64,000 nucleotides of DNA from Ophelia neglecta (lineage: Eukaryota). This document shows, piece after piece, positions 1 to 33,500 of the stretch. The stretch covers positions 27,156,001-27,220,000 of the forward strand of contig OZ260661.1 in assembly GCA_965285935.1 (NCBI GenBank), read 5' to 3'. The notes under the pieces are model-generated. The model had not been told where the DNA came from and searched no databases. It saw nothing but the letters and a program-made list of their open reading frames with translations. Each line of letters opens with the position of its first letter. Position 1 is the stretch's first letter. A program made the translations under genes and the position numbers.

Positions 1-423
1 CAGTCATGAAAGGACCACCCAGAGAACAGAGCTCACTGCCCAAGAACAGGGAACAAATAATTGTACGGAGTTCAAAATTTGCACAAAGCTATGAAATTAA
101 ATGTAAAAACATTGCTAACATGCTGTACGCAAATCTATGATCACATATACTAATATGTTATACTACTGAGCACACAAATATTGCAGTTTGCATCTATTAT
201 CAATAGCTGGGATACAATAAGCTACTAAATTTTACAAGCTGACCAGGAAAGTAATTAATAATACTTGGAATGGATATTTGTTGCAGAAAGGGAGTCAGGT
301 GCAACCTGGGCGTATTTGTGTAATTGAAAAAGCATAACTTTAAAAACTAATGTTTTCAATTTTGAAAACTGGGACTTTTTCATTCCTTGTTTCATTTTTT
401 TTTATACAGAGCAGCCATCTTAC

Positions 424-588
424 TTCATTTTTAGTCCAGTAATCTTTGATAATCTCTCTTAATTTTTCAATTTCGCCCTCTTTCTGAGCGACCAGACCCT
501 GGTCGTCACCAGAGTGCGCCCCGCCGTTTCCGTTGGTCAGGGTGACAGACTTTTCTGACTGAATCTTCTCGTATTTCTGCTCTAGGTC
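424..588 (-). CDS. RRBP1: Exon 22 (DLEQKYEKIQSEK...QKEGEIEKLREIIKDYWTKNE)
   Basis: gaaccag| ... |GTAAGA, 165 nt, phase 0-0. Confidence 0.78.
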
Positions 589-3500
589 CTGGTTCAAAGC
601 AAGCAAATCAAAATCAGGCACTACTCCCTGCCCGTACACAGGCCACTGCTATGGCATACGAGACCATCAAGTGAAAGATACTTATGTGAAAGAAGTTTGT
701 AATGAATTTTTATTTTCCTCACAGATAATTAGTTTGTATTTTTGAATGAAAATCTGACAACCTATTGAATTTCTTCCAATTTATGAACATGTAATAAACT
801 TCTATACTTTAATGGGAAAAATTCCATTCTGGTTTAAATTCGCTAATTCATGGAAAATACTCAGTCACAAAATCAAAACTTTGTCATGGGGTATTCCCAC
901 GTGTCTGTTGAGCCTAAATACCTCATGGTGCCAAATTAAAAACACATGAATTGTAATAATTCGCAAAATCCCCTGCAAACATTTCTACTGTTACAGTATA
1001 TTGTATAGGGATAAATTCTTTCCCCCCAGGAGAATGTATCATTCCACAGTGTTGTCTCGTATACAAGGCAGCAGCACAATGCACTGAACAGGGTTCACCA
1101 CAAATATGAACAGGCTCTAGGTGAAGCTTACTAGAAATGTGCAATTAAACTTTAACATTATCAGCCAAGTTTATAATCATTGTAATATCAATATTACTAA
1201 TATACTAAATACTCTAAACAATACCAAAAAAATAACTGACAAAACACGGATAAGTAGTACAGAAAATAAATGACAAACAATTTCCAGTAGCTACTGCTAT
1301 GAATAAACAACTAAAAAGGCAGTTAACACCAGCTGTCCTTGTTACATGAACCTTAAATTAAATATATGTTGAGGAAGCTGTGATAATATTAATGTGATGC
1401 AAATAACATCATGCCTTAAGGATCAGTAATATAAATTGAGCCAATGAAAATGTACATGTATTTAAATATATATTCGGGTGTAAATTAATATTTATTGTGG
1501 AACCAGGAAGGCGGCTGGTGACTTATTAAAGATTCATATTATGATCATAGATGCTTGTTCTAATGGTACAATTGCTAGTGCAAAGCAAGGCATAGGCGAT
1601 TAGCATAGGCAGCTTAAAAGACTGGTGTTAGATGAACTGGAAAAAAGTGGTTTAAGAAAAAATCAAAGGAAACGGTTGTCTTCATGAGATAAAACAAGGA
1701 AATAAAATCAGACAAAAATGACTTCAGGGACTACTGAACTGCATCATGGGGATCAATAAAAACCAAAGAATATTCTATTCTGTAATTATCAAAGAAGTAA
1801 TGGTGATAGATAACTCAAAAAGGCCTATTTTCATCCTCAAGAGGGACAAAACACAAAACTGTACTGACTGAAAGCTGGGTCATATAACAACAGAATAACT
1901 GAGCAAACTCAGGTCAGAAATACAAGACTCCATCAGATTAAATCTAATTTGTCAAGTGGACCAACTTGACCTAAAAAACATGATATTACTTGACCCTAAA
2001 CACATAATTAGACTTGACCTATATTGGCATTTCTGTACTTTTTGAAGGTGCTATCTTTCCAATTTGATGAAGGTGCTTAAAGATTAAATTTATTTCCTTA
2101 TTGCATGTGCATTAATCTCATTGTAGCTTGCACCTGGAACAACCAAACTCCAACAGATGAGTGGATCCAGCATGTACAGGGCGCAAATGTTCCAAAAACG
2201 AAGTGCATAAAAGGGAATACAAAATATCATATGCAGTTTCTAGGAAATAGTGATGTGTACTTTTGAAAGTGGTAAAAAAATTGAAGTGTAAAAATCTTAA
2301 AATATCATAAATAGTAAAGAGTTGAGTGAGCTCTAAGTTGATCCTGAGAGTACCGGTAATCAGATTATGTTTAGTTGTAATGTAGTGTGCCTTCTGTATC
2401 CTTGGGACTGCTCCAGGCTGCAGACAACTCGAGGGATAACCAAGTAGTGGTAGGTTCCTGTGTGAGTAGTGAACCCTGCTGATAAAACACTACTAGTACA
2501 CTAGTGCCCCACTTGACCCACCGTAACACTAGTGCCACACTTGACCCACTGTAACACTAGTGCCCCACTTGACCCACTGTAACACTAGTGCCACACTTGA
2601 CCCACTGTTACACTAGTGCCACACTTGACCCACTGTAACACTAGTGCCACACTTGACCCACTGTAACACTAGTGCCACACTTGACCCACTGTAACACTAG
2701 TGCCACACTTGACCCACTGTAACACTAGTGCCACACTTGACCCACTGTAACACTAGTGCCATACTTGACCCACTGTAACACTAGTGCCACACTTGACCCA
2801 CTGTAACACTAGTGCCACACTTGACCCACTGTAACACTAGTGCCACACTTGACCCACTGTAACACTAGTGCCACACTTGACCCACTGTTACACTAGTGCC
2901 ACACTTGACCCACTGTTTCACTAGTGCCACACTTGACCCACTGTAACACTAGTGCCACACTTGACCCACTGTAACACTAGTGCCACACTTGACCCACGGC
3001 AGTGCCGAGCATCAGCAGCACAGTAGATTACAACTTTATGTGTTAAAGCGTGTAGATGTAAGGTGTAAGTGGTTTTGATGTTACGATGTAGATGTTGTTT
3101 TAGTCTTATACTGTACAGCAGTGATGCTTACATGCCGAATGCTTGCATTCCCCCCCCCCCCCCCCCCCCCCTTACTCAGGATACTCCATTACACAGGTGA
3201 TATTGTACATGTACACATGCCCGAGTGGCTTACTTTGAGTTTGAGTTTTTGTGAGCCGAGCTCTTTGGTCAGGCGCTCGTTCATGGTGTCTTTCTTAGAG
3301 AGAATGCCCCGCAGATTACTTGTAGTAGTGCTGTTCTGTTGTAGGGCAGCCTCCGCTTTCTGGGAACAAAATTAAAGGCATGTTAATATCTAGGGATTTT
3401 TAATTACAGTAAAACTCAATAAAACTACTGGCCAAGAATTGTGTATGGCTTACTCCAAAATATAGTGTTTTGAGACTAGAAGATCTAGGATCTTGAGGAA

Positions 3501-6500
3501 TAAAAGGGGGTCTTGTTTAAACTGGAAGACATATCCATGGGAGGAGACACCCTTCCCACAGCTGTAAGACTCTTAGCAATAGCCTGATAGCCATAAGGAA
3601 TTTATTAAAGAATCCCCTAGACTCCCCCCTCCCCCCTTATTGGTCTCCATACCCCCCCCTCCCTCCCCCCAATTGTCTCAATTTTGGTTTATAACTAATA
3701 CAAATTGAATTTTCTTACCATCAACTGACAAATATTTTGACCAGTTTAATCAAAACTAACACTGATAATAAATTAAAAACTTCTGTAACAATAAAACGGT
3801 CAATTCCATTTCCAAATAAAGAACAGAAAGCTGCTAGCAAAGGAATTCGCATTATCTGGGTAAAAATGACACGGAAAGCAACTCTCACAAAAACTGGGCT
3901 ACCGACATGAAAATCTGACAATGAAAAATCAGAAAAATAAACTGCAGACCAAATCAAAGTAACTAGTGATTTATCGCTGAGAGTCTGTCGGAGAAAAGTA
4001 GCTTAGGATCCTAGCAGAGTGAGTCCAACAAAACCACAAACCCAGTTTAATACGGCACAATATTTTATGAAAAGCTGCTGTAACAGAGGAAACAGTCGAA
4101 ATGCTAACATAATAAAGAAAAACATCATACTGGCCCTATAAATATGTCAGTAAGGATCAAGTTACAAATGCCTAATTTGATAAAGGAATATTGAGTAAAA
4201 GTAGCTGATTAGAACTGCAGTTATTTGAGCAGCTTGCAACAAGAGAAAATAATACTTATTGCTCAGAAGCCAACCAGTTAATCCGCCCCTAGGTTTGTAT
4301 AAGTCAAGTGCTCAAAAGTATCCATCAGAAGTGGTTATAGCGACTCAAATTCTGAGCCAAGAGCAAAGAGGATAGTGGTCTGGAGCAGTATTATATTATC
4401 ATGAGCAGTCTCCGTAGAAAATCTTTTTTTTTGCATAGCAATTGATCAATTTAATAAGAAACGACTTTCACTATCTAACTACACTACTATTTTACTCTAC
4501 AACTAACACTAATGGATTTAATGGAGCTTTAATAGTTTCATTAGCAATGCTGATAGTTTCCAAAGCTAATATCAGTTGCACTGCAATGAGAATAAGTTCC
4601 TAAGAACTTTCCTGGTCTCCATGGAAACCACTACCAGTTAGATAAGGTATGTCACAGTGAAGAAAGAGGCCGGATGTATTTTAGCAAAAACAGTCCCAGA
4701 AATCCCGTGCATAAAGCTGGGTCCTACTCTGAGGGCCTCTTCTTTCTGGGCGAGCAGGGTCTGTAGGATGGAGAGCTCAGCGTCCTTGGTGTCCAGATCC
4801 AGAACCAGCTGGGACATGTCCCACTGCGACTTCTCCTGTACCCGCGTGAACACGGTCACCTCCTTACGACTCGGCGAGAGGGGGTCGGCCGAGCTGGGGT
4901 CCGACGGCTGGCGCTCAAAGTCCACGCGAGTGTGGCTCATTTCATCTATAGTCACCTTCAACTCCTGAGATGGGGTTAGGTGGAAAACATCCAATATTAA
5001 ACTGTATTAAATACACTATAAATACTCAACTTGCAGCAGTAATCACTGCATGGTCTACTACCCTATATATATATATATATATATGCACAAGCACAAACCC
5101 ACACAGGCGAAAGACAACTCTGACACTAGCTACAGCAAACTCTAGCAAGACTCAACTCAAAGGCATGAAATTGGAAAGTGCCGTAAATAAAAGGGTTATT
5201 CAGTGTGTACATGTACATGTATATGCAACAGAGAGTTTAAAGATGGATAGTAATGTAGATAGGGCTTTGGAACTACAAGTTCAATATATACAGTATAGTC
5301 TACCTCAGGAAATGTGGTCAAAACCTGTGCATACAAAACTTAACTTGATGTATCTTACAGTGTATTTCTTAACACTTTTCCTCCTGGAATATTTAACTAC
5401 TATGATTTACAAGTGGTTTACTACTATCCTTGAAGTGTGATTTACTACTAGCCTGGTAGTGTTTACTACTAGCCTAGTAGTGTGATTGACCAGTATCCAG
5501 AAGGAAAAAGGTTAAACAATCCCTTCCAAAAGTATACAAAATGTGCTCATGCTTGCATGCATAATTTCTAATAAAGTGACATCAAAATTAAAAATGCCCA
5601 AATTTGTCCAAATTTGTCCAACTTCTAAATAAATCAAGGATTAAGATAAATTAGGAGAGTAGGTGTGCAAGCAAATCACTCCTAATAAACGGCAATCTAA
5701 TATAAATATATACAATTATCAAGTCCTTATACCCTAATTATATATCAACAGGTCAAGCTGGAAATTAATTAGTATTAAATAGGCCCTTAACAGAATCACA
5801 CAGGGCATTTTCTTACTCGAATCTGGGAGTCTTTAGTTTCTATGGTTGACTGTAGGCGGTGTACTTCGGAGGCCTTAGCGTTCAGCTCCTTTTGTACTAG
5901 TGAGATCTCTTCTGCGGAGCGCTCGGCCTGACTGAGAGCGATTGTAGCCTGCTCGCAGCCCAGCCGCAGGTCCTTGGAACATAACAGCTCATTTTTATCA
6001 TGCATCCTCTAAAAAGCCTTTCTCACTGGGAATTTATTAGCTGAAGTATGTATCTTTATCTACTTATTCTACACGCCTCTCAAACTTTCCAGCCCAAAAT
6101 TCATGACCACTAGTTGACATTGTTCATCTTTATATAAAATCGATATTTACATTTCTAGTTCGAAAAATTTCAATAAAAGTAAATTTGAAGACAGTTTAGG
6201 TTTGATAATCACTTAGATCTAACCTGAAGATAAATTAAACTAAACCTTAGCATTCTCAAGAATGGATAATTATTCTCTATCAATAAAATAGAATGAAACA
6301 TACCTATTAATTATATCATGCATGAATATAATGGAAAAAGAAAATGGCTGGGATAATGAAAATTGAAAAACAATTTTTGTCTACACTAAAATGCAAGGAG
6401 ATTAGAATCAAGCTTAATTCTACGGAGACTCAAACAGTTGCTCCTTCTCTATAAGCTTGGCATTAAAGAAGGTCACAAGACATGTTTTGGTCACTTTTCC

Positions 6501-9500
6501 TTCAAAAAGCAGAATGCAATTCAAACCAGGACTATACAGAGGTGAAGAACTCGGGGAAAAATTGAGAAAAACGGCGGACACAACAAATTTGGCAAAATGC
6601 ACAAAGACGTTAGCGCACAACAATCTACATTCATGGTTATCTTACAGAAAAAATTTGAAAAAGTAGTGTTATATTATCGGGTAAAACACACATTTTAAAA
6701 AATAATTTCGCTAAAAAATGGTTGTAACTTGTTATCACGCCTACTATGTCGTTAGGGCTAAACAGTAGGATGAACAGAAGAGAAGAAAAGACAAGTTGAG
6801 AGCTTACAGAGTTTTCTTTCTTAATAACGGAGAGCTCATCTTGAATTCTTTGGAGCTCATTGGCTTTGTTTTTGAGCTCTTCCTCGACCCGAGAAGTGGC
6901 CTCGGAAGATTGTTCGGCCTCTTCCAATTTCTGCCGCAATTCCTGTACATCCTGCATAGAAAATAAATATTGAAGTTTCTCTAAAACAAAAACTGAACTA
7001 AATTAAATATTAAGCCACAAACGAAACAAACACTCATAATTTGACTACTTTCTATGTTTAAGGTATAAATAAAATTGTCACTAGAAGCATCTGATAAAAG
7101 TTAACAATTAATGTATCCTAGAGTATTTCCAATGTATTAGAGTCAGAACTACATAGGTAAGGACTATGACATGATATAAATAGGTGTCTATTTCCCCAAA
7201 AAGGAGTGCATTCAAGCAAAATTCCACACAAAAAAGGTGGTTGCATATTACCCGAGTTAATTCACAGCAAAAATTTTGAAAAACATTGAAATGGTGATTA
7301 GTGATTTGACAGAAAAAAAAACCCCAAAGTAGACCTGTTTGTATTTTTGCAGTATAATAATTTAGGTTGGATGGGTAGATTTTTGTAATGGGACAATAAT
7401 ACATTGGAACCACTGATCACCACACCGCCTAGTCTAGAAAACCAAAAAACACATCAGTTAGAACAGTAGGAAAGATCTAAAACTACCACATGCACACACA
7501 CACAGATATAGCAGAGTTCTTAGTTTGTGCCTTATGTCCAAGCTGGGCATGAATTCTTACATGATTTTCTTGCTTCATGGCTGTTAGCTCCCCTCGGACC
7601 CTGTCTAGATCACCTTGAACCAACCCAAGCTGGCTCTCCTTGGCATTGAGCTCCGAATCTCTTTCCGCTAGCCGCTCTTGGACAGACTGTTGCTCCGAAA
7701 TCTGGTGATTCAACTGAACTTCCTTGGAATGAAGCTGCTCTTGAATCAGGTCAAGTTGCTCCTGTGTGGTTTGGAATTGAGCATCTCTTGTCTCCAATTG
7801 CTCCTGGAGTGATTTCAGTTGAGTATTGCTGGCGTTCAGCTCCATTTCCTTAGCAGAAAGCTGCTGTAGAAGTGCCTGCAGATCAGAATCGCCGGTATTC
7901 AATGCTAACTGTCCGGCGCTCAGCTGCTGTTTGACTAATTCTAGCTCTGCGATCTGACTGTTTAGCACCTGGTCTTTTTCTCCTACCAGTTCTCTGGTCT
8001 GGTTGAGTTCACACCTGACGGTCTCCAGCACAGACTCCTGACTGGTTAGCTGCTCCTTGAGTGAACAGATCACTGTCTCGTGGGCAGCAGCCTCCGTCTC
8101 CTTTGAATGTAGTTGTTCTTCACGGGACTGCAATTCTGAATGGCTGGCAGTAAGTTCACTTTCTTTAGCATTAAGTTTCTCCTGAAAGTTTGCCAGATCA
8201 TTTTGAACTGATTGTAGTAGGGCATCTTGGGAGTTTTGCTCAGATTCCCTAGATCTAAGCTTTTCTTGAGCCTGCTCAAGACTGCTTTTTGCTGTATCAT
8301 ATTCTGAGGTTTTAGAGTGTAGCTGCTCTTGAAGGGAGTGCACTTCAGACATTCTGGTTCCAAGCGCAGTTTCTTTGGCATCAAATTTATCCTGAAGACT
8401 TGCTAAATCCTCTCGAAGCTGGTCTCTTAGGGAGTTCAGCTCTGCGTCCCTGGCATGAAGCTCAGATTGGGTGGAATTAAATTGGTCTCGGAGGCTGGCC
8501 AGATCACCCTCTAAGGCCTGTAACTGTGATTGTTGTGAGTCCTGTTCACTTTCTTTTGATTTAAGGTGGCCCTCGGCTTCCTTCAAATCACCCTTGGCAG
8601 ACTCCAGCTCGGATGTTTTCAACTGGAGTTGCTCTTGGAGAAACTGTAACTGTGTGTGTCGGTCACTGAGCTCAGATTCCTTGCTGTTGAGCTGCTCCAG
8701 TAGTGTCTGTAGCTGGGAGTCTCCAGTGTTCAAGGCAGATTCTCTGGCACTCAGCTGTTCTTTAACCAGCTTCAGTTCACTGTCTTTGGCACTAAGCTCC
8801 GTTTCTCTCGAGTTCAGCTGTTCCCTGACTAAATCCAAATCATTTTGGACAGATTTGAGCCCGGTGTCTCTGCTGCTCAGCTGATTTTCTTTATCCTGAA
8901 GCTGCTCCTTGAATGACTGTAGCTCTGTAACATGAGCTTTTAGCTCAGCGTCTTTACTGGCCAGCTCTTCTCTGAGGGCTGCAAGTTCCTCTAAGGACTT
9001 GGTGTCTGTACTACTGGCACTTGGGTGTTCTTCTGAGGGTTTGGAACTTGTACTACTAGGGTCTGCTGCCATCTCTTGGCGTTTCTGTAACTCCTACGAA
9101 GGTAAGCAACATGGGTGAAGAAATCATGAAAGGCAATGATGGCGACTCTGTGCTGAAATCAAATATCTAGCTGAATATTCTAACTAGATCGCACGGTCTA
9201 CATCTAAATATGCTTGTGACATGTGTACACATGCTTGTGATGTGTACACATGCATGTGACATGTGTACACATTCTTGTGACATGTATCCTAGGCATGCCC
9301 CCAACCCACATAACTGCACATCCTATCTGTACAACCAGAAAATAGATCATTATGACTTTTTGTACCACAAAAACTGTACCATATAAGTTAAACACCATTA
9401 CCAAGTTATATGTACAATAAAAAATACCTAAAATACTTCAAAAGCACTGCAAACCACACTGGCAATGACCTCACAGTGTTTAACCTATATATATGACCAT

Positions 9501-12500
9501 CTTGTCTCTACTAGTCTGCCTAGCTATTCATGGTTTATAAATCATCAAGTGTGGACCATGCACTGTTTTATCATCAAGCTAAATGCACAAATCCACACAC
9601 TTTCTCAACAGTAGAGCCAGCTTACTTCACATGTCTTTTTGGCAGTGTCCAGTTCTTGGGAGAGGGAGTCGACTTGGCTAGTTTTATCCGCAATCTCCGT
9701 TTGTAGACGAGCAACTGCCTCGTTGGTATCGTCCGATTTAGACGTCTCCTCCGCAGAGAGTTGGGTGATCTGCTCATTGAGGGCCTTCACCAGAGATAGG
9801 AAAGGAAAGAAATACAAATAAAAATAAAATAGACACATTAAATGCTGGCGGATTTAGGAAAGAGCATACAGGTTTACTCGTCCTCTTAAGACATGGGGAT
9901 GGGACTCCTGTTCTCACCAGAAATTGCCCCTTGGAGGGCCTTGAGCCTGTGGGGTGCGTGTGCCCTCCCAGAGGGCCTCTGGGGGCTTGGCCCTCAGACC
10001 TCCTCTGGGGGATTCCTGAGGGGATGGGGTGGGCCCATACCCCCTCTGGGAGGGCACAAAGGGTGTGGGGTGGGTGTCCTTTTCCAGAGGGGTCATTGGG
10101 GCCTAACCCCCTAGAGACCCCTCTGGGGGATTGCCAAGGGGTGGGCCCATGACCCCTCTGGGAGGGCACAAAGGGTGTGGGGTGGGTGTCCCTTCTCAGA
10201 GTGGTCATTGGGGCCTAACCCCCTAGAGACCCCTCTGGGGGATTGCCAAGGGGTGGGCCCATGACCCCTCTGGGAGGTACGTACCCTGTAAAGCTGACAC
10301 AAAGCTTTTAATAAATCCTAGATCCGCCAACATTACAATGGAGTATCAACTACACTACCTAGTAGTAAAGACATTTAAAACTCAACGTCGTAACCCAGCT
10401 CACAGTCCCAGCTATAGCTGATTGGCCATCAAACCGGGTTACTGTGTCAACCCGTGTCACCATCACGGCTAGGTCATATGGGCAGGTAACCCGGGCAACA
10501 GTGGTGACCCAGGTCACAGTCACCGCCATAGCAGATGAGCTGGTTACTCAAGTTACAACATTTAGTTAAAACAAAGGTAAAGAACTAGAGAAAAATGAAT
10601 CTATGAAACATAAAATAAACTATACAAGTATTATAGGAGAAAAAAATTCTAAGCTAATGACTAAATCTACCACTGGATTATACATATATATATATATTTA
10701 ACTAATGCTCATTTCACATATTGCAGAGAATACTGTGCAAACAACTGGAGGTTATTTATTGGGAGTTTTCTGCCTCCTTTCTCTGTTCTAATGAGATGTG
10801 TACGAGTTCTTACAGAGTTATTTTTCTGTAGGAGCTCCACCTGTGTCTGGAGTGACTGCAGCTCGCTGAGTTTGGCGTCGAGCTCAGACTTGACCTTGTT
10901 GAGTTCCTCCCCCATTTGAGTCTGCTCCTCTTGGCTCTTAGCCAAGTCAACATGTGACTGCTGGAGATCCTGATCACCGAGAAAAAAAACCAGCCATCAC
11001 CAAAGGAAATAAACAAATACTGTTCAGAAAGAAAAAATAAAATCAATTAAAACATCAACGAAAACATCTAAGACATCTATAAAAAAAATGTATGTATAAA
11101 TTCCAATATCTTAAGAATGTTTATAAACAGCTTTCAGCTGAGGAAATCAATTTTAAACTATTTTTTATAAATTTCATTTTAAGAAGATAGAGCACCTGCT
11201 TCACAATGTGTTTTTGACATCAATATCACATGATGTGTATCACATGATTGATTGAGTGACACCTGGTGGGATCATCTAGTACTTATTTTTCCTGCCAAGT
11301 GGATTTTCTCAGAAAACCTTCTGGTTCTTACTAGTATAAAGGGTATGGTGAAAATGGCAACCTTAAATGCTGTATTTTATTAACATTAAGTCAAGAGAAG
11401 TATGGGGTCATGAAACAGGGTGAAAATATCCTTATATGTACTACTTAAAAAGTTGGACATATTCAGGTAAATCCTAGATCTGGTCAGCTCATTTGAACCC
11501 GTTAAGGTAGATAAATATAACTAAATGAGGGAATTATTTTTGTATATGTAGGTTGTGAATCAACCTATTACATGTCCAGCTGGACTGTCTACAATATTAA
11601 GACTTGACTAGAATTACCTAACCTCCCCTCCCCCCTCCCCCCACCCCCTATCTATACCTATGTGGTAGACCCATTATGTATAAGCTGATTCACTATGCTA
11701 ATTACTATGATAGTGACTTGATACAAAATAATAGAATAAGGGTTTTTTGGAAGACAAACAGTCCAATAAACATGAAAAATACAAACATACACATAGGTTA
11801 GAGTTTTATATTAGCATTGTTATGTACAAAGCTGATTAACTAAACAGATGCATGTTTAATTTCATAGATTTCAGAGTTTCCTAACAACAGATCTAATGCC
11901 TACAATTAATGTCAGCTCTGAGAGATGAGAAAAGTTAATAGATTATAACTCCCAGCAGAATAAGAGTTAATTATTCAAAGAGACAGGTCACAGTAATATA
12001 TCCATGCTTCTTCTCCATCACAACTTACTACTTCATTGGGTTGACCAATTTTGACATATTTCGATGAAGTTCGAGGCTCTAATCACACTACATTTTTATG
12101 TACAAGGGTTTGGCAGATATCTTCACACTAAACCTTCTCTATACTACTATGATAAAAACTTTACTACTATGTAAAGTCAAGACTAGGCTGCACCTAACAC
12201 TACTATGTACATTTATAATCAGAACTAGGCTGGACCAAACGACTGACTACATGGGATTCTAAGGCCAGCAGACGACTACTTCTAAAGTGTTGCCCTTGAC
12301 AACTGTTGTCATGGCAACCGTCTCCATGGGACCCAGAGCACACAATAATAAAGCGAGATTGCTCACGTAGCGGAGGCCGAAGGTCTCCTCTCGCAGCTGT
12401 ACCATGGCAGCTGTCTTGTTGGCCAGCCCAGCCTGCAGCTGTGACAGCTGATCGGCAGCTGCACAGTCGTTCCTTCGTTCGGCACGGAGATCCTGGCCAC

Positions 12501-15500
12501 ACAAATAATAGCAGAGACAACGGGTAACCATGGTAACAGATAGAACCTATACAACTACAAAATGTTTAATTTCTAAAAGCATGAGAAATTCTAGTGTGCA
12601 AGGTTTATAAACAATCTTCATGTTTGACCCTCAAATTAACACAGTCAACATCAAAAGTTTTGCATTTTAATAAAAATACACAGAATAACATTCTGTTCAA
12701 AAAGCTTTGAAGAAGTCATGCTCGCCAAAGAGAGTTAAAATATCATTAATATGACGCAACACATTTCGAATGCAATTTGTCGGCATTATTGCATAGTGAT
12801 TAATAAATCATATATGTCCTTAATATGCAATATATAAAATGAAGAAGCCAGATTGGCGGGGGAACTCATTCAACAGAAAGCATGTATAGTATGACACTGG
12901 AGGGGAGACACAATCTGACCAACCTCACTGCTTGAATAGCCAAAATAAAGGTATATTCAAATTGCAAATGCATCCAAATTTGAATATGTATCACCAAAAA
13001 ATTTCATGTCAATGGAAACATTGGAATACCAACAACATGCCATGGCATATTTCACGGGCCGCAGGCAAACAACACTGAAGTAGTACCATCAGGCACTAAA
13101 TATCAACTCTGGATTATTCAATAATTTGACTACACACGTAGCAAGACAAGGGATAAATCCGACAATTAAGGAACGGAATTCATTGAAACTATGAATGGGG
13201 GAAAATTGATCACATTCAAACAGAAAACAACCACTAACATGCCTAGATAAGCTGGCACTTTGGTGGGAAATTCTCTAGTCTTAACAGCTGAATCAATCAA
13301 ATAAACATCCATTTAGACATAAAAGGGTCAAAAAGTAAAAAATAATTAAACTAAACAGGAAAAAGTAAGTCTTAATAGCAGCCCACTAAAGGAAAGGAAC
13401 ACCAAGACATTTTAAAAACAGATAGGTTAGCTTGGTTTCTTTTTTCTGTGAAGTGTTAGTCAAATGGTCATGTCATGAAGTAGTATGTACAAGTATAGCC
13501 TGAGAGAAGAGAACATTTATGGGAAGCTCAAGCTTCAGCGACCTCACTGATGTCATTGTGGTGTTAGTAGTATACCGAGGTAACGAGGCTTACAGAGTTT
13601 TCTTTTTGTGCTTTTTCCAGAGCAGCACCGAGCTCGGCGAGTCTAGCCTCCTTCTCCTGTACCTGAGCCTCAAGGTCGGCCGAGTGCGAATGAGATGCGT
13701 CTGCTGAGCCCAGCTTCTCTGACAAGGACTGAAAAACATAGCAGACGACACCTAGTGGCAGAAATGGCCAAAAGTCACAGCACTGCTAGTTAGTAGTTTA
13801 CTGGCTGTTTCAAACTCAAATGAAGCAGCTATGACTTCAGAATTACCTCGCTGGCTATATTTCTATCCAAGTATTGGATTTTAAGGAATTTCCTTTCACT
13901 TTTAAATTAAGATGCCTGCCGTATTTTTGATTGTTACCCGGTGTTTTGTTTTATTTTAAAGTTATATTAGTACAAATTTAAAAATATAAGCAGACACCAG
14001 ATGTGAAATTAAAACTGCTGCAAGTTCATTTGATAACTGTTACTTATCATTCTAATTCAACCCTAATCAATATATCCTGGCCTATAGATGGCAACTTAAA
14101 GAATGGTCCATCTGTGCTGTTTAATTACTACAAGTACTAGCTAATAATTAAGTCAGGCTTAATCAATTAAAAACACTATAAATAAATGTGCAGATAAAAT
14201 GAGTGCTGTAGTAATGTGTTAGTTCTCAGCTGTTACATGGGAACTGAGAGGAGTATATACAAACAATCAATAAATTGTATTTTTGTCTCAGAGGGAGCAG
14301 AAGGGGTGCGGACATTAGAGACCTTGAGATTTTCTGACGTGTCTGTTCGGAAACCATAGGGCCCTGCCCACCAGGTATAATTAGAGCCTACAAGGTGCAT
14401 ACCTAATCCTCTGGCAGAATTTAATCAGACTTTATTACCCGGTTAGCTGGGCCCCATGCGGACGGACACTCAGTAAAGTCTTAAACTCTCTATTAAAAGG
14501 TAACAGCTGAAACTGTTAGCCAAACACTTGGGCGGTTTTTCACCATGTGTTTCATATTCAATATTCTTCAGAGCTAATCAATATTCCATTCACTGCACAC
14601 TTGTATACAAGCAGACAGTTTGGCATCCGCTCATTGGTGCACGAAAAATCAAGTGTTAGGGTTAAGCAAAGAATTATGGGTGTGAAATACATGCTCTATA
14701 TGTACTTGTGTGGCTCTACCAAGTGGACCAATCGATTCAAATCCAGCTAACTGCTAAAAACTGCTGGAACTTTGCATATGTCAATGTATCTAAGTCTAAG
14801 TTAACATTAATTAAGGGTTATATTCTCTGAACTGACTATTTGTTAGAACTTCAAATTATAAGCCCTGCTAGTTAATAATTCATGAACAAGACTCAGTAAA
14901 GGAGGCACTCCCTCCTGTGGAGGTTTTTATACCATAAAAAATCTTAGAAACCACACATGTCTTCCAGGATGGTAGTGAGTCATGTCAACTTGTCATGTCA
15001 TTGATACCATTTATATAGCAGCAAAAACAGAAGCATGAAGTGGTTTTAAATGGGAGTTAGTGAATCACCCGTCTGGTGTCGTGAGCAGTGAGCACGTTGG
15101 TACCAAGACACATGACAACGTATGGTCCTAAGGTCGGCCACCTAAGGAAGCTTTTCTATAGTATTTCTAATAAATAACACCGATATTGACAGATTGTATG
15201 ATCTACCCAGGTGTGCTGAGAGAGATCTGACATCTGATAAAAAGGTCTGTCTGTCAGTTGGCAGCCGTCTCCCACTTAAGGCGCCTAGTCTGCCTATCCC
15301 AAGGAACTGTGCCCCATGAATTTCAATAATAATCACAAATCAAAAAATAATACTTAGATATGCCCACCAATTAACTTCATTTTTATGATTTTATTTGGTG
15401 GCAGCTGCCAAAAAGCAGTATATATACATACAGCATATATCATATATTGTTACCATGATTTAGTCCGGACTCTGACATAGGAAGCTAAGAAATCTCAAAG

Positions 15501-18500
15501 GTATAAATGAGGCTTTAATCTTAGCCAAATGACAAGATGGCTGACAAGATGGCAAGATGGCTGACAAGATGGCTGACAGGATGGCTGACAGGATGGCTGA
15601 CTGACAGGATGGCAGCCAGGTTGGTATACTAAACAGCAGCCTTGTAGATACATATATAACTTTGACATTTGTACGCACATAAAGAGCCATATAATTTGAT
15701 AATACGGATGTTGGTGGGGCTGGGCAGTTAGTATGCCTGGGTATGGGCCTAGCATGCCAGGTTAGGGTACCTATGTGTAGTGTGCCAGCATAGCAGGGTA
15801 GGGTACTTAGTGTGCCATGGTAGGGTACCTACACTGTACATGTCATGTAGTGTGCCAGTGCAACAGGGTAGGGTACCTAGTATGCAATGGTAGGGTATCT
15901 GCATGTAGTGTGCAACAGATTAGGGTACCTAGTGTGCCATAGGAGGGTACCTATGTGTAGTGTGCCAGGGTAGGGCAGCCAGTGTACCAAGTGTACTATT
16001 TAAGTGTTAGGACCCTTTCTATTCCTAAAACTACACTAGAGGAGGGTCTGATCACTAAGCCAATGAATGCAGACCGACACCCCCCCCCCCCTCCCCCCAC
16101 CCTTCTTCTGAACAAAAGATTAGCAAAAGAAAGTACATGAAAGCAAACAGGCGCTAATTTAACCAAGTTGCATTATCATGATTATCAATGATACAGTTAT
16201 TAATCTCCTAACTAACTAATTAATTAAATGTACAATGTCTGTAAGATGCACAATATATTCAAATGGTGTCTTTATGATGCATTCATTAGTATGTGCTTGA
16301 TGATGGAATTAAATGATTATTCTATCACAGCCAATTGATAAACTCATTAAACTCATCAAACACAAAGGGAATGATCTGCTAGATATCATTGTTAGATGTT
16401 AAGTGTTTAAAATCAAAGAAATCCTTTGGTGCCCCCTTGTCAAGTTCACAAGCTTTCAGTGATTTGCTGTATTTTATGTAGGGAATGGGTGTGTTATTGG
16501 AAAAGGGGTTAGTGCAATGTGATTGGTCAGTGGTTGTTAGGGAGTAAGCATAGAAACCAATCAGAATGGAGCTTACATTTTTCTCCTCTTTGAGAGCTGA
16601 AAGCTCATTGGCCAATGCTTGTAGATCGGCTGTTTTTGTAGTTAGCTCCGCCTCTACCTTTTGCGAGTGCTCGGCAGATTCTGCTAGTTTGGCTTCTAAA
16701 GATAATTTGTGCTCTTCCTCAAGTTGCTGAAAATTAAAATGCCCCAGACCACTCTCAGAAATGAAATGCAACATAAGGATCCTTAACAATTTATATTCTT
16801 TATCCTGTCCTGAAAGAACATAACCAAGACTTATCTATCTTAAGATTTGTCCTAAAGGAACATCATAATGGGTATCAAAACAAATTAATTTCATATAAAC
16901 ACACTAGATGGTTGTAAATTTCATAGATCTGCTTGTTAATATTGTATATTGTTTATATTAATAAACTGCAAATGTTTAAAGTGTTATCCCCACCTAGAGC
17001 ACACAACCACCAACACACATGACAAATGAGGTCAAACCTAGCCAATACATGTATCACATGAGGTCAAACCTAGCCAATACATGTATCACATGAGGTCAAA
17101 CCTAGCCAATACATGAATCACATGAGGTCAAACCTAGCCAATACATGTATCACATGAGGTCAAACCTAGCCGATACATGTATCAAATGAGGTCAAACCTA
17201 GCCAATACATGTATCAAATGAGGTCAAACCTAGCCAATACATGTATCACATGAGGTCAAACCTAGCCAATACATGTATCACATGAGGTCAAACCTAGCCA
17301 ATACATGTATCACATGAGGTCAAACCTAGCCAATACATGTATCACATGAGGTCAAACCTAGCCAATACATGTATCACATGAGGTCAAACCCAGCCAATAC
17401 ATGTATCAGATGAGGTCAAACCTAGTCAATACATGTATCAGATAAGATAAAGAAAAAAATGTCTGAGCTACATATAAAGGCATTTTGACACACTTCACAC
17501 AAGTCTAGCGGTAGTAAATCTATCGGCCTTATAACTCGTATAATTCAAGATTTCAGAGTGATTCTAGTTAGCATTTCATTCAGATGATAACTGGCACATT
17601 TTCTGTACGTATGTAAAAGGAAGCAAATTAAAAATGATCAACAAGAAAATACCAGCTAATCACAGCACAAAATGGAGAAGAATGATGTAAAAATAAAAAT
17701 AAAATGATCTATAGACTGTTAAAAGCATTCCAAACAATTTCAGAGCGTTTTAGATGAGTGTAGCACAGCAGAGAGGTGACATGTGGTGCTAGCTGCCATA
17801 CAGTTCGTGCAGGCCCGCCAAGTAGAGTGCAGGCTACAGTCGCCGAATCCCTAGCCGGGCAGCACCTGGTCCAACGGTCAGAACTTACTGATGTAAATTA
17901 ATACACAACAAATGAAAATAGGTTATACACAACTAACATTGGTAAATACAGAGGTCCCTTACATATTTTTTGTGCTTTGCACGTTCACTTTTCAAATCGT
18001 CCTTTAGCTTGGCGATTAGTGAGTCTTTGCTATCGAGATCAGACTTGTGTTTCATAGCGCTTTCCGCCATTTTTTCCATCTGGGATAGAGCGTCCATTGC
18101 TTTCCAATTTTTCTGCCGTAAGTCCTGTGAGGGGGAGGGTGGAATTTCAATTTAGAATTCAGAAATAGGGATATTTAAATTTGCTACAATCATGCAATTT
18201 TCCCCTTTCATGCTTAAACAAGCTCTCTCCCTCCGATGAGCCTGGATATCATATTTTTCCTATTTTTCTAATTCTAACTCTGGACACTATTTCAGTGTTA
18301 ACTGGTTGCCTTTTTCTCACTTTGTTTGTGAACTATTAACAAAATGCATAGCACCATAATGTAGTTTTTCCTTTGAGATATCTAGGTCTATTGTGCAACA
18401 GTTTCAAACAGGAATAAAACATTGGAAAATAACCATAAATGTGTTTCATTTCTGATGATATTGTTTGTCAGGCATATTTCACAGATCTTGTGTCAAAGTG

Positions 18501-21500
18501 AAAGTGTAAATGTTGGTTTCATTTCATTGATTGATGAAGGAACTTCAGGCAAAAAATACAGCATAATAATCGGTTGAAATTGATACTCCTCTACCCCTTC
18601 AAGTTTGAAATGGAACAGTCCAAAATGAACAATGCCAACTGTTTCAATATTTAACAGTTTACTGGTTGGAAATGAAACACATTGATCAGTTGGCTGGGAA
18701 TCAGCAAAGCGTTTCAAACACACAAACAGTACATCTGATACGGTGCTCTCACCAAGTCAATGGAAAATGGCGCACAAGGACTTGGCAAATCTAGCTCCTT
18801 GTATTAATGTCTTAAATTATTATTAAAGAAAGTACTCGACTTTCTTTGTCTTTTTTTATTGCTAACAGAGAGGACTTGTACCTGCGGTTAAAGGCATTGT
18901 TTTTCATTGTAAATTGAATGTTTCCAGTGTACTAAAGTTGTGCCGAAATTACCACTGGGCCTATAAACATGTATGCATTGTAAAACGTGGAATCAGTGCA
19001 CATCCTTAATTTTATGAACTCCAGGAGCCACAAAACTTGAAGTGTGCAATGATTTCAAGCCCCACTGGCCTCAGAGGTTGGAGAGCCACATGCCGATAAA
19101 TGTTATGCCCTCAATACCGCAAACAATAGACACTGTGCGAACTTCATGCTTTGTTGTATATATACAAGGGTGGAAATCAAGTCCAGTTTGTCATTTTCCA
19201 AGTTAACTTTTGACAAAATCACCACCTCAGATGTAAACAAGCGAGTTCCTGTTCTCTGACAAAGCATACTACTCACATTATTTTTCTTCCTCTGGGCTTC
19301 CAGGTCTTGGTTCACCCGAGACAGCTCGGCCAGCTTGGCCTTCAGCTCATCCTGGAGATTACACACTTCAGAGTCCTTCTCGCCCAGGCTAAAATAAACC
19401 AAGAAAAAACCATCAAATAAAGAAGCAAGAACAGGGCGGCCGGGGCAATCCGGAGCAACATAATGTCTGACTAGTAGTATGAGCACTACTAACATTATCT
19501 TGTATGTTATATAGTACTAATCACAGAACATCTGATCTAAAGCCTTGACTATGAAACAGCAAGGTGCCAACAGTTTTACATACAATAAATTTTAACATCA
19601 ATACCATATTGACTCTAATAATAAACACCCTGTTATAATTCACACCCTTGTTAATTATTTTTTACCTGCTATAATTAGAGACTATGCAAACCTGAATAAT
19701 AATAATATCTGTTTTGTCCATAATAATTAACACAGCCATAAATATTACCAATTTTAGGTGGGCATTTTATTAGAGAAATTGCAGTAATTACCAATCTGGT
19801 GGCTTAGAAAACCCATATGCAACAAAAATAATATGATAAAACTTATGTGAGTAGTACACTAAAGGGACAAGGGTTAAAGGTTATAACCTACATTTTCTCA
19901 TGCATGGAGATGTCGATAGTGGCTGTATTCACTGTTTCCCCGATAACGTGTTTCTTAGAGTCTCCATCGCCACTTGGGGGAGCCTCCTGTCCCTCCCCGG
20001 CCGTTCGCTCCTTGACAGTTTGTAACTGAGTCAGCAGGGAGTGGTTCTCCTGGCGTAGAGTCTGTTTATAGGAGAAGAATCAAATCAATAGAAAAAATAG
20101 TCTTTATTAACCCTTTCATGCCCATTACAGTGTCCAATCTGATTAAATTATAGATATTCTGGTCTAAAAGAGTTAAAGTGAACTTTAAAGGAGTATTTAT
20201 CCAGAAAAGAAGTGCTGTAAGAATTTACTGATTTCCCATCATAATTCTATTGGTATCCTACAAGCAAGGATAGTTCAAATAGTTCTTTAATGAATAGGGA
20301 AGTAATTTAAATTCAGAAGCAATTAAACACACAATATTAGTTTAATGTAAAGAGATATTGTTATAGAGGAAAATATAATTCAGTGCATCATTGAAGTATT
20401 TTTTGGAAGAATAGGGGAACTAATAGGAGTTCATTTGTTGAAAATTTAAAACTTTTTTTTAATAAACACCTACTTCACATCATTTGAATGCTCTGATTTA
20501 GCTGAATTTAATTGGTTACTGTCAACAAACAACAACAAAATATCAATGAATTAGATTCTAAGTTACATAGGGTTAGGTACCACAATCAAAATTAATTACT
20601 GAAAACATTTGGTTAAAGTTAATTGCCCTTTTAAAAGAACCTTACGAGCTATCACAGACCTGTATGTCTCTATCCTTCTCAACATTGGTCTTCTCCATGT
20701 CCCCGATCCTGGCCTCACACTGCTGACGAACGCCCTCGATCTCCTTCATTTTGGCCTCCAGGTGGCGTACATGATCCACACCTTGTGACTGCGAGCTTTC
20801 CATCATGGTAATACGTTCTCTCAGTTTAGCCATCTCCTGGTAAGTGATTTTAATATAGTCATCAAAGTATGGAGCCGCAGCGATTACAAACCCTCTCCCC
20901 ATTGGCTCTTGCAGGTTACCATGGCAACTCCCTCATAACATTAAGTATAGGAGAATGGACAAGTTTCTATGGATTAGTGCATTCCCATGTACCGAGGTGC
21001 TATCAAGCCGAGGAGACGCATTATGCACAAAACTTTTGATATAAATATCTGAAATAACATGCACTTAGTGCACTTTCCATATAAAACAAATTATAGAAAT
21101 GCACTTTTCTGAATATAGATTTCAACAAATTGGTTTATGAATTGTAGTGCCTGTTTGATTAAATTATATATCAGCCACTTCTGAAATAACCCCTCATAAT
21201 GTATTCCAAAAAAATAAATATAAATATGAAGTCATAATTTATCCTATTAAATAGTAATGTGGAGATAATTAACTGAAGTAACGAGCAATGCTAAACAGGA
21301 TATTGTTAATGGTCTTTGCAGAGCAGATTCACTGTGACCTAATTAGCCCTTTAACCTAATGGTGTGACCTACCTTATCAGCCTGATGTCCAGCGTTGTTC
21401 GACTTTTCCAGGTCACGTCCCAGGCCAGTGTTTCGGGACTCGGCCCTGCGTAGTTGTTCCTCGGTCTCCTTCAGTTTACGGGACAGTACATTCTCAGCGT

Positions 21501-30500: not shown

Positions 30501-33500
30501 CTGTATACAATACTTAGCCCTGAACCATTGCTTTCTAGGTCTATTGGGAGTTTTCTTGGTCTACATATAAACAACAATTATATGAAAACATTTCATTATA
30601 AAATTGTCCACCCTAATTCCTGTAATGATTGAAGACTATGAAATCTATCAACCAAATAATGGTATTTCTATTTTGTCTTTCATAATCATCACATACACCT
30701 GTAAATTTAATAATTTAGGCGAGTGAATTATTAGCAGCATGGTACAACCATATAATATTCATTGTGCACAGATCAAACACACCATCTCTCTTTAGCCAAT
30801 GGCAAACGTAAAATCTAGTCTGTTTTCTAAACCATCTTTACCTATTCTGTTCTTGCATTATCACACATACTTTTCTTTGGTGAAGCAAGTTGTGAAGAGC
30901 AAAAATGTTGAATGCACTAATGGATTAATTGTATGTCTGTAATTCTCCTGAGCCATGTGATAGCATTTTTTACCTTTTTCACTTGTGTTAGGCATAAAAC
31001 GTCCACGAAGAATGGCTGGAAATACCCATTGGCACTCTGTTTATTCTCTCTGCTTCTCAAGTCATTATTTTCAAAACCTATTAGTGATATATTGGTATAT
31101 CTGCCAAACTTATCTGCTGACCATGTTTTATATGAGGCTGGTTAGAAGGCTGATACCTTTACCTAGTTTTTTGAAAGGCCCCCTGAAGGCTTGTTTATCA
31201 CATTATACATTTATCACCTTGTCCAGAGACAGCTAGGCCATTCATTTTCAGCTCTGTTTTACCAGGTATTTCAGTTATCCATGAACTATTGATGCCTGGG
31301 TTGCCATTAAGAAGAGATGGATTCTTGAATACAATGTATTAAAACAACTCAACAACAACTGTGAGTACGTAAACACGTGTATTTAAGGTGCCAAACTAGT
31401 GTCACACAAGGCCAAGCGGCTTAATGAAAATTGTTAACACAGGGTTAACAATGACAACATTCAGGTGGTAAAAACAGTAAAAAAATTAAAATATGAAACT
31501 GATAAACAATCTGTACTATACAATATACAAATTGGATATGGAGACTTATTTTGTCTATGTATACAGGTTGAACCTATTATCCAGACTTATTTAGTAAACC
31601 TGATATCTATGCAACATGCAGGGTACATCCATATTCATCATATTTTTCATTTTTTTACTTTCAATGTGCTTTTTCCAAAAAAACAAAATGCGGTCTATCT
31701 AGTTAAACAACCAATTAAACCATGCAGCCTAATTTGCAAATTAAATAAGATCAAAGGAAGTTTCTAGACTAGAACTGTCTGCTAAAATATATGGTGAGAA
31801 CAAAAACCAAGAAGGAGTTAATTATCAGTTAACTTTTGTTGGAAGTGCACAAAATTTATGACTAATAAAAGTTGTTTTCAACAGCCGTTGGAAGTTTTTA
31901 GCAACATAAAAGCACAATTAAGATTTAGATTTAGGTATTTTTGTCTTCTTTTTGTCGTTACATTGTTCAGCAGTTGTTCACTTAAGTTACAAACAAACTT
32001 ATGTGGCAGTTTAAATATCAAAAAATAATTCAATATTTAAGACATGGCATACCCAAATGGCATTTTTCCCACCCAAATTGTTTAAAAGCTTGGACAGTAC
32101 CATGTCTAACCTTTATATGAGAAGTTCAAGAAGTGTTGTTTGAAATTGACATTCAACACTTCCTAACTGGAGGCAATTTACTCCGCATTCAAGAGCAAAT
32201 TTATTTGCTTCTGCTTTCATCATAAAGATAACATTTCTTTTTCACTTCCACACTCTTAAAAACATCATTAAACCTCAACAGATATTAATTCACCAGTAAT
32301 GCTAATGGTGAATGAACCTAATAAAACATAGAACTTTAAATTAAGAAAGCTAAGAAAGGTGTTATAAAATGATTGGGTTACCTTCTTGTAGCGCCCGTTC
32401 TTTCTCCTCCAGCTGTTTCTTGAGAGCGAAGGTAGGATCTCCCTTCTGGGGTTTCTAGGAGTACAACAGGAACCAGATTAGTTTATACTGCCAGGATTTG
32501 ATACCTGAGAACTGTCGGCCGAGAGCAATATCACTGATATCACTCGCAGCATCATATGACGTGTAAATCACTTGGCAGGCTCTCAGCCCTTGTAAAAGGT
32601 CTCTGATTAGGGGGGGGGGGGGGGGGGGGCTGATAGGGAAGGGGGGTAAATCACTTGGCAGGCTCTCAGCCCTTGTAAAAGGTCTCTGATGGGGGGGGGG
32701 GGGAGGGAGGGAGGGGGGGGGGCTGATAGGGAAGGGGGGTAAATCACTTGGCAGGCTCTCAGCCCTTGTAAAAGGTCTCTGATTAGGGGGGGGCTGATAG
32801 GGAAGGGGGGTAAATCACTTGGCAGGCTCTCAGCCCTTGTAAAAGGTCTCTGATTGGGGAGGAGGGCGGAGGCTTGATAGGGAAGGGGGGAGGGGGGGAA
32901 ATCACTTGGCAGGCTCTCAGCCCTTCTAAAAGGTCTCTGATTGGGGGGGGGGGGCTGATAGGGAAGGGGGAGGGGGGAGAAATCACTTGGCAGGCTCTCA
33001 GCCCTTGTAAAAGGTCTCTAATTGGGGGGGGGGGAGAGGCCTGATAGGGAAGGGGAGGGTAAATCACTTGGAAGATCTCTGATTGGGGGGGAGGGGCAAT
33101 AGGAAAGGGGGTAAATCACTTGGCAGGCTCTGGGAAGGGAGGAGGGGGGGAGTACTCAAGACCAGGCTCTTATGGCTTTGGTTAGGGGTGGATCCAGGCA
33201 CAAAATCCCCAGGGCTTTGATTTGAAGAGACGAGTATCAGGCCAGGCTCCAAGACAACAGATTGAGCTGTTATGTTAGGGCTCTGAACCACTCTAACCAG
33301 GTCCCTAGCAAGGCTCAGGCTATAAATGTAAAATTGAGAGGCTTAATTATCTGAAAATGTGCAGTCTCTCCAACAGCTCTCTGAGAGCTGATCCATATTG
33401 TTTTTAAACAAGGCAGGCTTATTAACTGTCTTGCTTAAAATGAAGAACATCAACAATTGATTGATTTAAATATTATTGATTGGACCCCTTCACCCCCTTC

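Follow-up and report, generated by a model that had tools for sequence, protein, structure and literature searches.

Kinectin (KTN1) and RRBP1 shape sheets of the endoplasmic reticulum (ER) and anchor translation factors and motors, and their cytosolic reach depends on the rod. Human KTN1 has 1,357 amino acids, and the C-terminal coil of vertebrate KTN1 includes tissue-specific in-frame cassette exons (V1-V5), which change its binding partners (PMC12768868). A literature search found no paper on invertebrate kinectin rods. Here we describe the exon borders, the module family and the 21-residue period of a kinectin-like gene of Ophelia neglecta, together with the layout that it shares with a distant relative. 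This gene is encoded on the minus strand of a 64,000-nucleotide stretch (positions 27,156,001 to 27,220,000 of contig OZ260661.1, GenBank assembly GCA_965285935.1; hereafter the window, which contains no runs of N) in a genome of 762 Mb, and its exons 11-22 span window positions 18124-424. The explanation that we consider probable is that, in one single-copy gene of the kinectin/RRBP1 kind, the rod grew after the junction QRKKNN/DLRQKNW (the slash marks the intron) by old duplication of an exon-module and by expansion of a repeat within exon 17.

The exon borders were determined by locating the start and end peptides given in an earlier, sequence-only reading of the window and then reading the flanking bases directly. 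All 12 exons from 11 to 22 have AG/exon/GT borders, are of phase 0-0 and have a length divisible by 3 (Table 1), just as that reading had claimed; together they amount to 3,249 nt, and the roughly 1029 amino acids that it had assigned to exons 12-22 correspond to an exact sum of 3,087 nt, or 1,029 amino acids. Its statement that exons 1-10 mix phases likewise agrees with the bases (intron 1 is of phase 1, and the one that precedes exon 10, with donor GAAAAT/gtaggt and acceptor ttttag/C, is of phase 2), and every exon end that it had listed after RKKNN, namely KEEKN, QKENS, QKNNS, KQENH, KKENS and WTKNE, is present. By our own estimate, the chance of meeting 13 consecutive phase-0 introns in the window is about 1e-4, if phase 0 is assumed for half of all introns. 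The phase-0 run extends past exon 22, and in the 30 kb examined below the window we found at least seven further phase 0-0 exons (153, 75, 138/144, 132, 93 and 168 nt in stretch L003, and 78 nt in stretch L004), one of which reads EGILNQLQNSVESEEQKW, which we take to be the C-terminal motif of kinectin/RRBP1. The implication that an all-phase-0 layout marks the inserted exons is therefore not supported: uniform phase 0 extends over the entire 3' half of the gene. In the 762-Mb genome there is a single copy each of exon 11, exon 17 and the EGILNQLQNSVESEEQKW exon, so the array is bracketed by unique exons of one gene, on one strand and in frame. We infer that the exons of the array would belong to one transcript, with most of them included by default.

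We compared the exons with one another by pairwise Smith-Waterman alignment. Several pairs reached z 7-8 against plain shuffles, and against shuffles that preserve the heptads the best pairs (exons 15/18, 12/18, 16/18 and 13/18) reached z 4.8-5.7. Exons 15 and 19, which the earlier reading had noted as both 156 nt long and alignable, do align with a score of 67 (z 7.7 with plain and 3.5 with heptad-preserving shuffles). Thirteen sequences can be aligned nearly without gaps over about 52 columns: three are exons of the distant relative described below, and ten are exons or exon ends of the window, with exon 11 and the tail of exon 10 among them. The aligned modules start with D-L-(R/Q), end in K(K/E)(E/N)N and have spaced leucines and a near-invariant lysine in common. 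As a control, a profile was built from exons 12, 13, 15 and 18 only and searched against all other exons and 150 unrelated coiled-coil proteins (the matches of the exon 17 search). All of the top five matches were kinectin exons that had been held out of the profile (rI, r11, e19, rJ and e10, those in r being from the relative), which scored 17.7-20.7 bits and align in register with the exon starts and ends; among the unrelated coiled-coil proteins, the best stretch reached 16.2 bits.

These scores have to be weighed against convergence, in which coiled-coil composition and splice-site sequence preferences would make unrelated exons alike in the absence of any exon duplication. The pair scores are indeed modest and drop when the heptads are kept, as seen for exons 15 and 19, unrelated coiled coils come to 16 bits with the module profile, and the DNA likeness between modules is confined to 18-27 nt at exon ends and to donor sites, which, if the exons were duplicated, means that the duplications are old. 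However, convergence does not readily account for the fact that the five top held-out sequences all belong to one small group of kinectin exons and are in register with exon borders, that most within-species pairs match less well than exon 19 and the relative's exon 11 do, or that the module members have DL[RQ] starts, lengths of 42-55 amino acids and K.EN. ends in common. We consider convergence unlikely. The claim that the modules resemble each other beyond coiled-coil composition is thus borne out by the heptad-preserving shuffles and the held-out profile, and on these comparisons the module family is real, by a modest margin. Further, exon 19 is nearest to exon 11; its resemblance to the exon 11 type implies that exon 11 is itself a member of the family and that RKKNN/DLRQKNW is the archetypal module boundary.

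Exon 17 differs from the small module exons, although the earlier reading had lumped them together. It consists of a 33-residue S/P-rich linker followed by about 478 residues of unbroken heptads, arranged as some 22 repeats of 21 residues (three heptads); the autocorrelation peaks at lag 21 (z 16.5), and all multiples of 7 are high. Homology searches were made exon by exon. For exon 17, an exhaustive search of 1.84 billion representative proteins found no recognizable orthologue and no match below 1e-30; the top matches, the best of them at 3.9e-22, are unrelated repeat proteins, none of which matched any other exon. A metagenome scan with exon 17 found nothing. Exon 17 matches many coiled-coil Pfam families. 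Its sole word-search match (P0001) was dismissed because it sits among bacterial genes.

Exon 1 has about 28 relatives in ENA, JGI and Logan assemblies. The distant relative used here (P0179), on a 467-kb ENA contig (ena:ERZ25069853:ctg32970l), has an exon 1 that is 42% identical, as well as counterparts of the upstream exons. Its exon 10 counterpart has the same phase-2 acceptor and ends in QRKKNN/gtaagt, and its exon 11 counterpart starts with DLRQKNWKAMEAL and is 57% identical over 46 amino acids (tblastn; Smith-Waterman score 128, z 11.7), so that the same phase-0 QRKKNN/DLRQKNW junction is found in both species. Beyond the junction, the relative has small phase-0 module exons of 53, 38 and 52 amino acids, the last of which (rC) has an AAG acceptor like that of exon 16; the best match of exon 16 among the relative's small exons is rC tied with rI, a weak one (score 68, z 4.5). 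By position and a short word match only, the relative possibly has a counterpart of exon 12 as well. Interleaved with the small exons are giant phase-0 exons of 830, 545, about 1,843 and 893 amino acids, all with GTAAGC donors, the last of which holds short tandem units of the KLKSESQLKDSDIE type. With these giant exons, the relative's kinectin-like protein would be considerably longer than 5,000 amino acids, and the rod after the junction measures about 1,080 amino acids in O. neglecta versus more than 4,400 in the relative. The sequence-only reading had proposed a lineage-specific tandem duplication of exons: the homologous duplicated modules stand, but they are not private to the lineage, as the distant relative shares the junction, the layout and a larger expansion, and 'lineage-specific' holds for the details only and not for the array as such. 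The rod stretch after the junction is thus an old expansion hot spot and not a one-species cassette.

With respect to family identity, exon 1 visibly encodes a hydrophobic anchor followed by a K-rich stretch. The Pfam family PF05104 (Rib_recp_KP_reg) matches exon 1 with an E-value of 0.013 and 17 bits (cut-off 25), and among 16 relatives one reaches 0.0014. The nearest ESM Atlas cluster to exon 1, at 0.92, is 'Isoform RRp1.8 of Ribosome-binding protein 1', 73% of whose members carry PF05104, and a profile search with exon 1 reaches one PF05104-carrying distant relative at 5.8e-5. C-terminal to the anchor there is a long coiled-coil rod (the heptads and 21-residue period of exon 17 and the heptad-like small exons), and homologous tandem exons occur all in one phase. 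The motifs RKKNN-DLRQKNW and EGIL..LQ.SVE.EE.KW (the latter C-terminal) are both present in the gene, the first being conserved with its intron in the invertebrate relative; RKKNN-DLR(E/Q)KNW and EGIL..LQ.SVE.EE.KW are presumably shared with vertebrate kinectin/RRBP1. Searching the PDB with exon 11 or with the C-terminal exon gave chance matches only. Overall, this invertebrate gene, present in a single copy, is probably of the kinectin/RRBP1 kind, and in its protein an N-terminal anchor and a lysine-rich region are combined with a cytosolic coiled coil of great length.

DNA variation was examined in contigs from three sequencing runs (X1-X3) of one DNA sample; these contigs cover window positions 4900-10899, span introns without splice joints and are silent on splicing. 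They differ from the window by 87 single-nucleotide variants (SNVs; 40 listed) and 9 indels in 6 kb, and these many differences point to high heterozygosity or to a different individual. None of the nine listed indels falls inside an exon, and 15 of the 40 listed SNVs do, 10 of them non-synonymous and 5 synonymous, which indicates that the frame is kept and the residues are weakly constrained. These data bear on whether the model could be partly wrong, with some of the frames not being used exons or the array being part of a second transcript whose start lies within the locus. Such an error would agree with the weak amino-acid constraint and with an exon 17 that has no recognizable orthologue in protein libraries, and the exon model itself was derived from sequence. 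Against it, a 1,533-nt open frame in DNA of 38-45% GC is beyond chance, conserved exons flank the array on both sides on the same strand and in frame, the relative keeps the same order of parts, the indel variants spare the exons, and a search of the window with the module profile found no cryptic modules in the introns. We regard an error of this kind as very unlikely.

The explanation by old module duplication and repeat expansion nevertheless has several points to its debit. Membership in the kinectin/RRBP1 kind is weakly tested, in that the PF05104 match is sub-threshold and the likeness to the vertebrate KTN1 motifs is presumed; exon use and the assumption of a single transcript are read from the DNA. 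The likeness of the modules is modest (20 bits versus a background of 16 bits, in short sequences), exons 20 and 21 fall outside the module, and the tail of exon 17 is only weakly module-like. Finally, the listed SNVs are equally dense in exons and introns, which, with their excess of non-synonymous changes, indicates weak constraint on the residues.

With these points taken into account, a duplication origin of the modular rod is supported by the sequence comparisons. A module of about 50 residues, with a D-L-(R/Q) start, a loose 20-residue stretch, EL..K..EL..L...L and a K(K/E)(E/N)N end, would have been duplicated serially as an exon, long ago, after the QRKKNN/DLRQKNW junction, the introns always lying between modules and in phase 0, and a 21-residue (three-heptad) repeat would have expanded within the large exon 17. 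Because copying a phase-0 exon yields a phase-0 exon, the uniform phase would be an inherited by-product of rod growth.

The sequence-only reading had instead regarded the symmetric exons as a combinatorial cassette, in which the exons skipped in a given tissue determine how long an ER-anchored tether is and thereby make it a molecular ruler. Any exon from exon 11 to at least the seventh past exon 22 could be dropped without a break of frame, as can V1-V5 in vertebrate KTN1, which does use these exons in its C-terminal coil in a tissue-specific manner (PMC12768868); further, rod length differs several-fold between the two species and is evidently free to vary. However, the donors of exons 11-22 read GTAAG in 10 of 12 cases and GTGAG in one more, and the pyrimidine tracts of most acceptors are good, which is what default exons would show. 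The exon lengths are mostly not multiples of 7 residues. Exons 17, 20 and 22 contain Pro/Gly/Ser-rich hinges and the first downstream exon a further flexible linker, and with several such linkers the rod is unlikely to be a rigid ruler. In addition, the known vertebrate cassettes alter binding partners and not length. We therefore give the proposal little chance and consider it unlikely in its strong form, and a splice-tunable kinectin is in itself an already known idea, from vertebrate V1-V5. The related and wider proposal that in this clade kinectin is an ER tether of freely variable length, with its reach set per tissue by skipping of phase-0 modules, seems improbable to us; if true, it would represent a length-tuning mechanism of a kind not described for ER-shaping proteins.

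Table 1. Features of the kinectin-like gene in the window (positions are those of the window unless a contig is named; a slash marks an exon border)
Feature	Position	Strand	Length	Description	Basis
Exon 1	60764..61483	-		Start codon, transmembrane anchor IGIAAFICITLILLITTFCM, lysine-rich region	Sequence reading
Exon 10	19277..19388	-		Acceptor phase 2, donor phase 0, end LEAQRKKNN/gtgagt; last 28-31 residues match the module tail	Module profiles, 17.7-20.9 bits, right-justified
Exon 11	17963..18124	-	162 nt, 54 aa	Start DLRQKNWKAMDAL; conserved head of the module family	Relative's counterpart, single-copy
Exon 12	16577..16726	-	150 nt, 50 aa	Module, end LKEEKN	Pair scores, alignment
Exon 13	13594..13728	-	135 nt, 45 aa	Module, end AQKENS	18 identical nt with exon 18 across exon end and donor
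Exon 14	12367..12492	-	126 nt, 42 aa	Start DLRAERR, donor TAC/gtgagc; divergent module member	Alignment
Exon 15	10814..10969	-	156 nt, 52 aa	DLQQ...LQKNNS, core module	Versus exon 18: score 79, z 5.7 with heptad-preserving shuffles
Exon 16	9626..9784	-	159 nt, 53 aa	Unusual AAG acceptor	Best match in relative: rC, tied with rI
Exon 17	7561..9093	-	1533 nt, 511 aa	S/P-rich linker, then 21-residue repeats, end MKQENH	Autocorrelation
Exon 18	6808..6951	-	144 nt, 48 aa	DVQELRQK...IKKENS, core module	Pair scores, profile
Exon 19	5817..5972	-	156 nt, 52 aa	Start DLRLGCE, putative copy of exon 11 type	Score 91 (z 7.3) versus relative's exon 11; 19.8 bits held-out
Exon 20	4728..4964	-	237 nt, 79 aa	Proline-rich non-coil linker, then short coil; no clear module	Module profile, 9.3 bits
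Exon 21	3234..3359	-	126 nt, 42 aa	Not a module	Module profile
Exon 22	424..588	-	165 nt, 55 aa	DLEQKYE...YWTKNE, internal glycine-rich linker; divergent module; gene goes on below window	Alignment
Giant exons of distant relative	L016:1598-20231 (ena:ERZ25069853:ctg32970l)			Four giant coiled-coil exons after the conserved kinectin junction	Gene-call walk

Outside the array, the donor of exon 2 is of phase 0 and the acceptor of exon 3 of phase 1, and this mismatch across a 12.6-kb intron (window 38302-25576) indicates that at least one small exon was missed there by the model based on open reading frames. In relatives, a small exon, K(P/S)QKGDP(T/M)FI(L/M)KK(Q/R)LEEKE, separates exons 2 and 3 (at about 9505 in L006 and about 13785 in L011). 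L006 (positions 1-13056 of ena:ERZ25069296:ctg22286_3x_l) comes from a closer relative, in which exons 1, 2 and 3 are 53%, 71% and 64% identical, respectively, and whose introns are much shorter, so that the whole gene probably lies on its 62.8-kb contig. Gene calls on this contig read through TGA, an artefact that arises when the gene caller is applied to eukaryotic DNA. The introns of the array contain minisatellites (28 bp x 17.9 at 2498-2997, 32 bp x 13 at 17026-17440 and 112 bp x 2.2 at 10026-10277), and the 22-kb first intron contains a G-rich tandem repeat of about 71-93 bp and a 23-bp x 16 minisatellite (window 32612-33071 and 36746-37120). The minus strand of the G-rich repeat gives long proline-rich pseudo-frames, and neither of the two first-intron repeats looks coding.

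We propose that the stretch past the conserved junction is an evolutionary hot spot, at which whole-exon duplication and repeat expansion within exons would have led to very different sizes in two invertebrates. The locus would also provide a clean natural case of uniform intron phase arising through exon duplication, and it suggests species in which one could study how tether length affects ER organization; by itself, it does not demonstrate a new regulatory mechanism.

Among known systems, vertebrate KTN1 resembles this gene in its N-terminal ER anchor, its long cytosolic coiled coil and the in-frame exons in its C-terminal rod, and we take it to carry the motifs RKKNN-DLREKNW and EGILQKLQ. 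About 1,200 residues lie between the two motifs here, compared with presumably about 100 in the human protein; the extra part here is composed of module exons of about 50 residues and the 511-residue repeat exon, whereas alternative use is the feature of KTN1. RRBP1 (p180, the ribosome receptor), to which the nearest ESM Atlas cluster and the weak PF05104 match of exon 1 point, likewise has an N-terminal anchor, a lysine-rich region and a long coiled coil. It contains an internal tandem repeat of variable copy number, which is a basic decapeptide near the N-terminus and lies in one exon, whereas the repeated elements here are acidic/polar coiled-coil units of 21 residues and exon-modules of about 50 residues, located in the C-terminal rod. 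In titin and nebulin, as here, whole exons are serially duplicated in one phase, any subset of them is in frame, and length varies between species, but their folds are unrelated, they belong to another cell compartment, and documented differential splicing, in which the choice of exons included sets filament length, is a feature of titin and nebulin.

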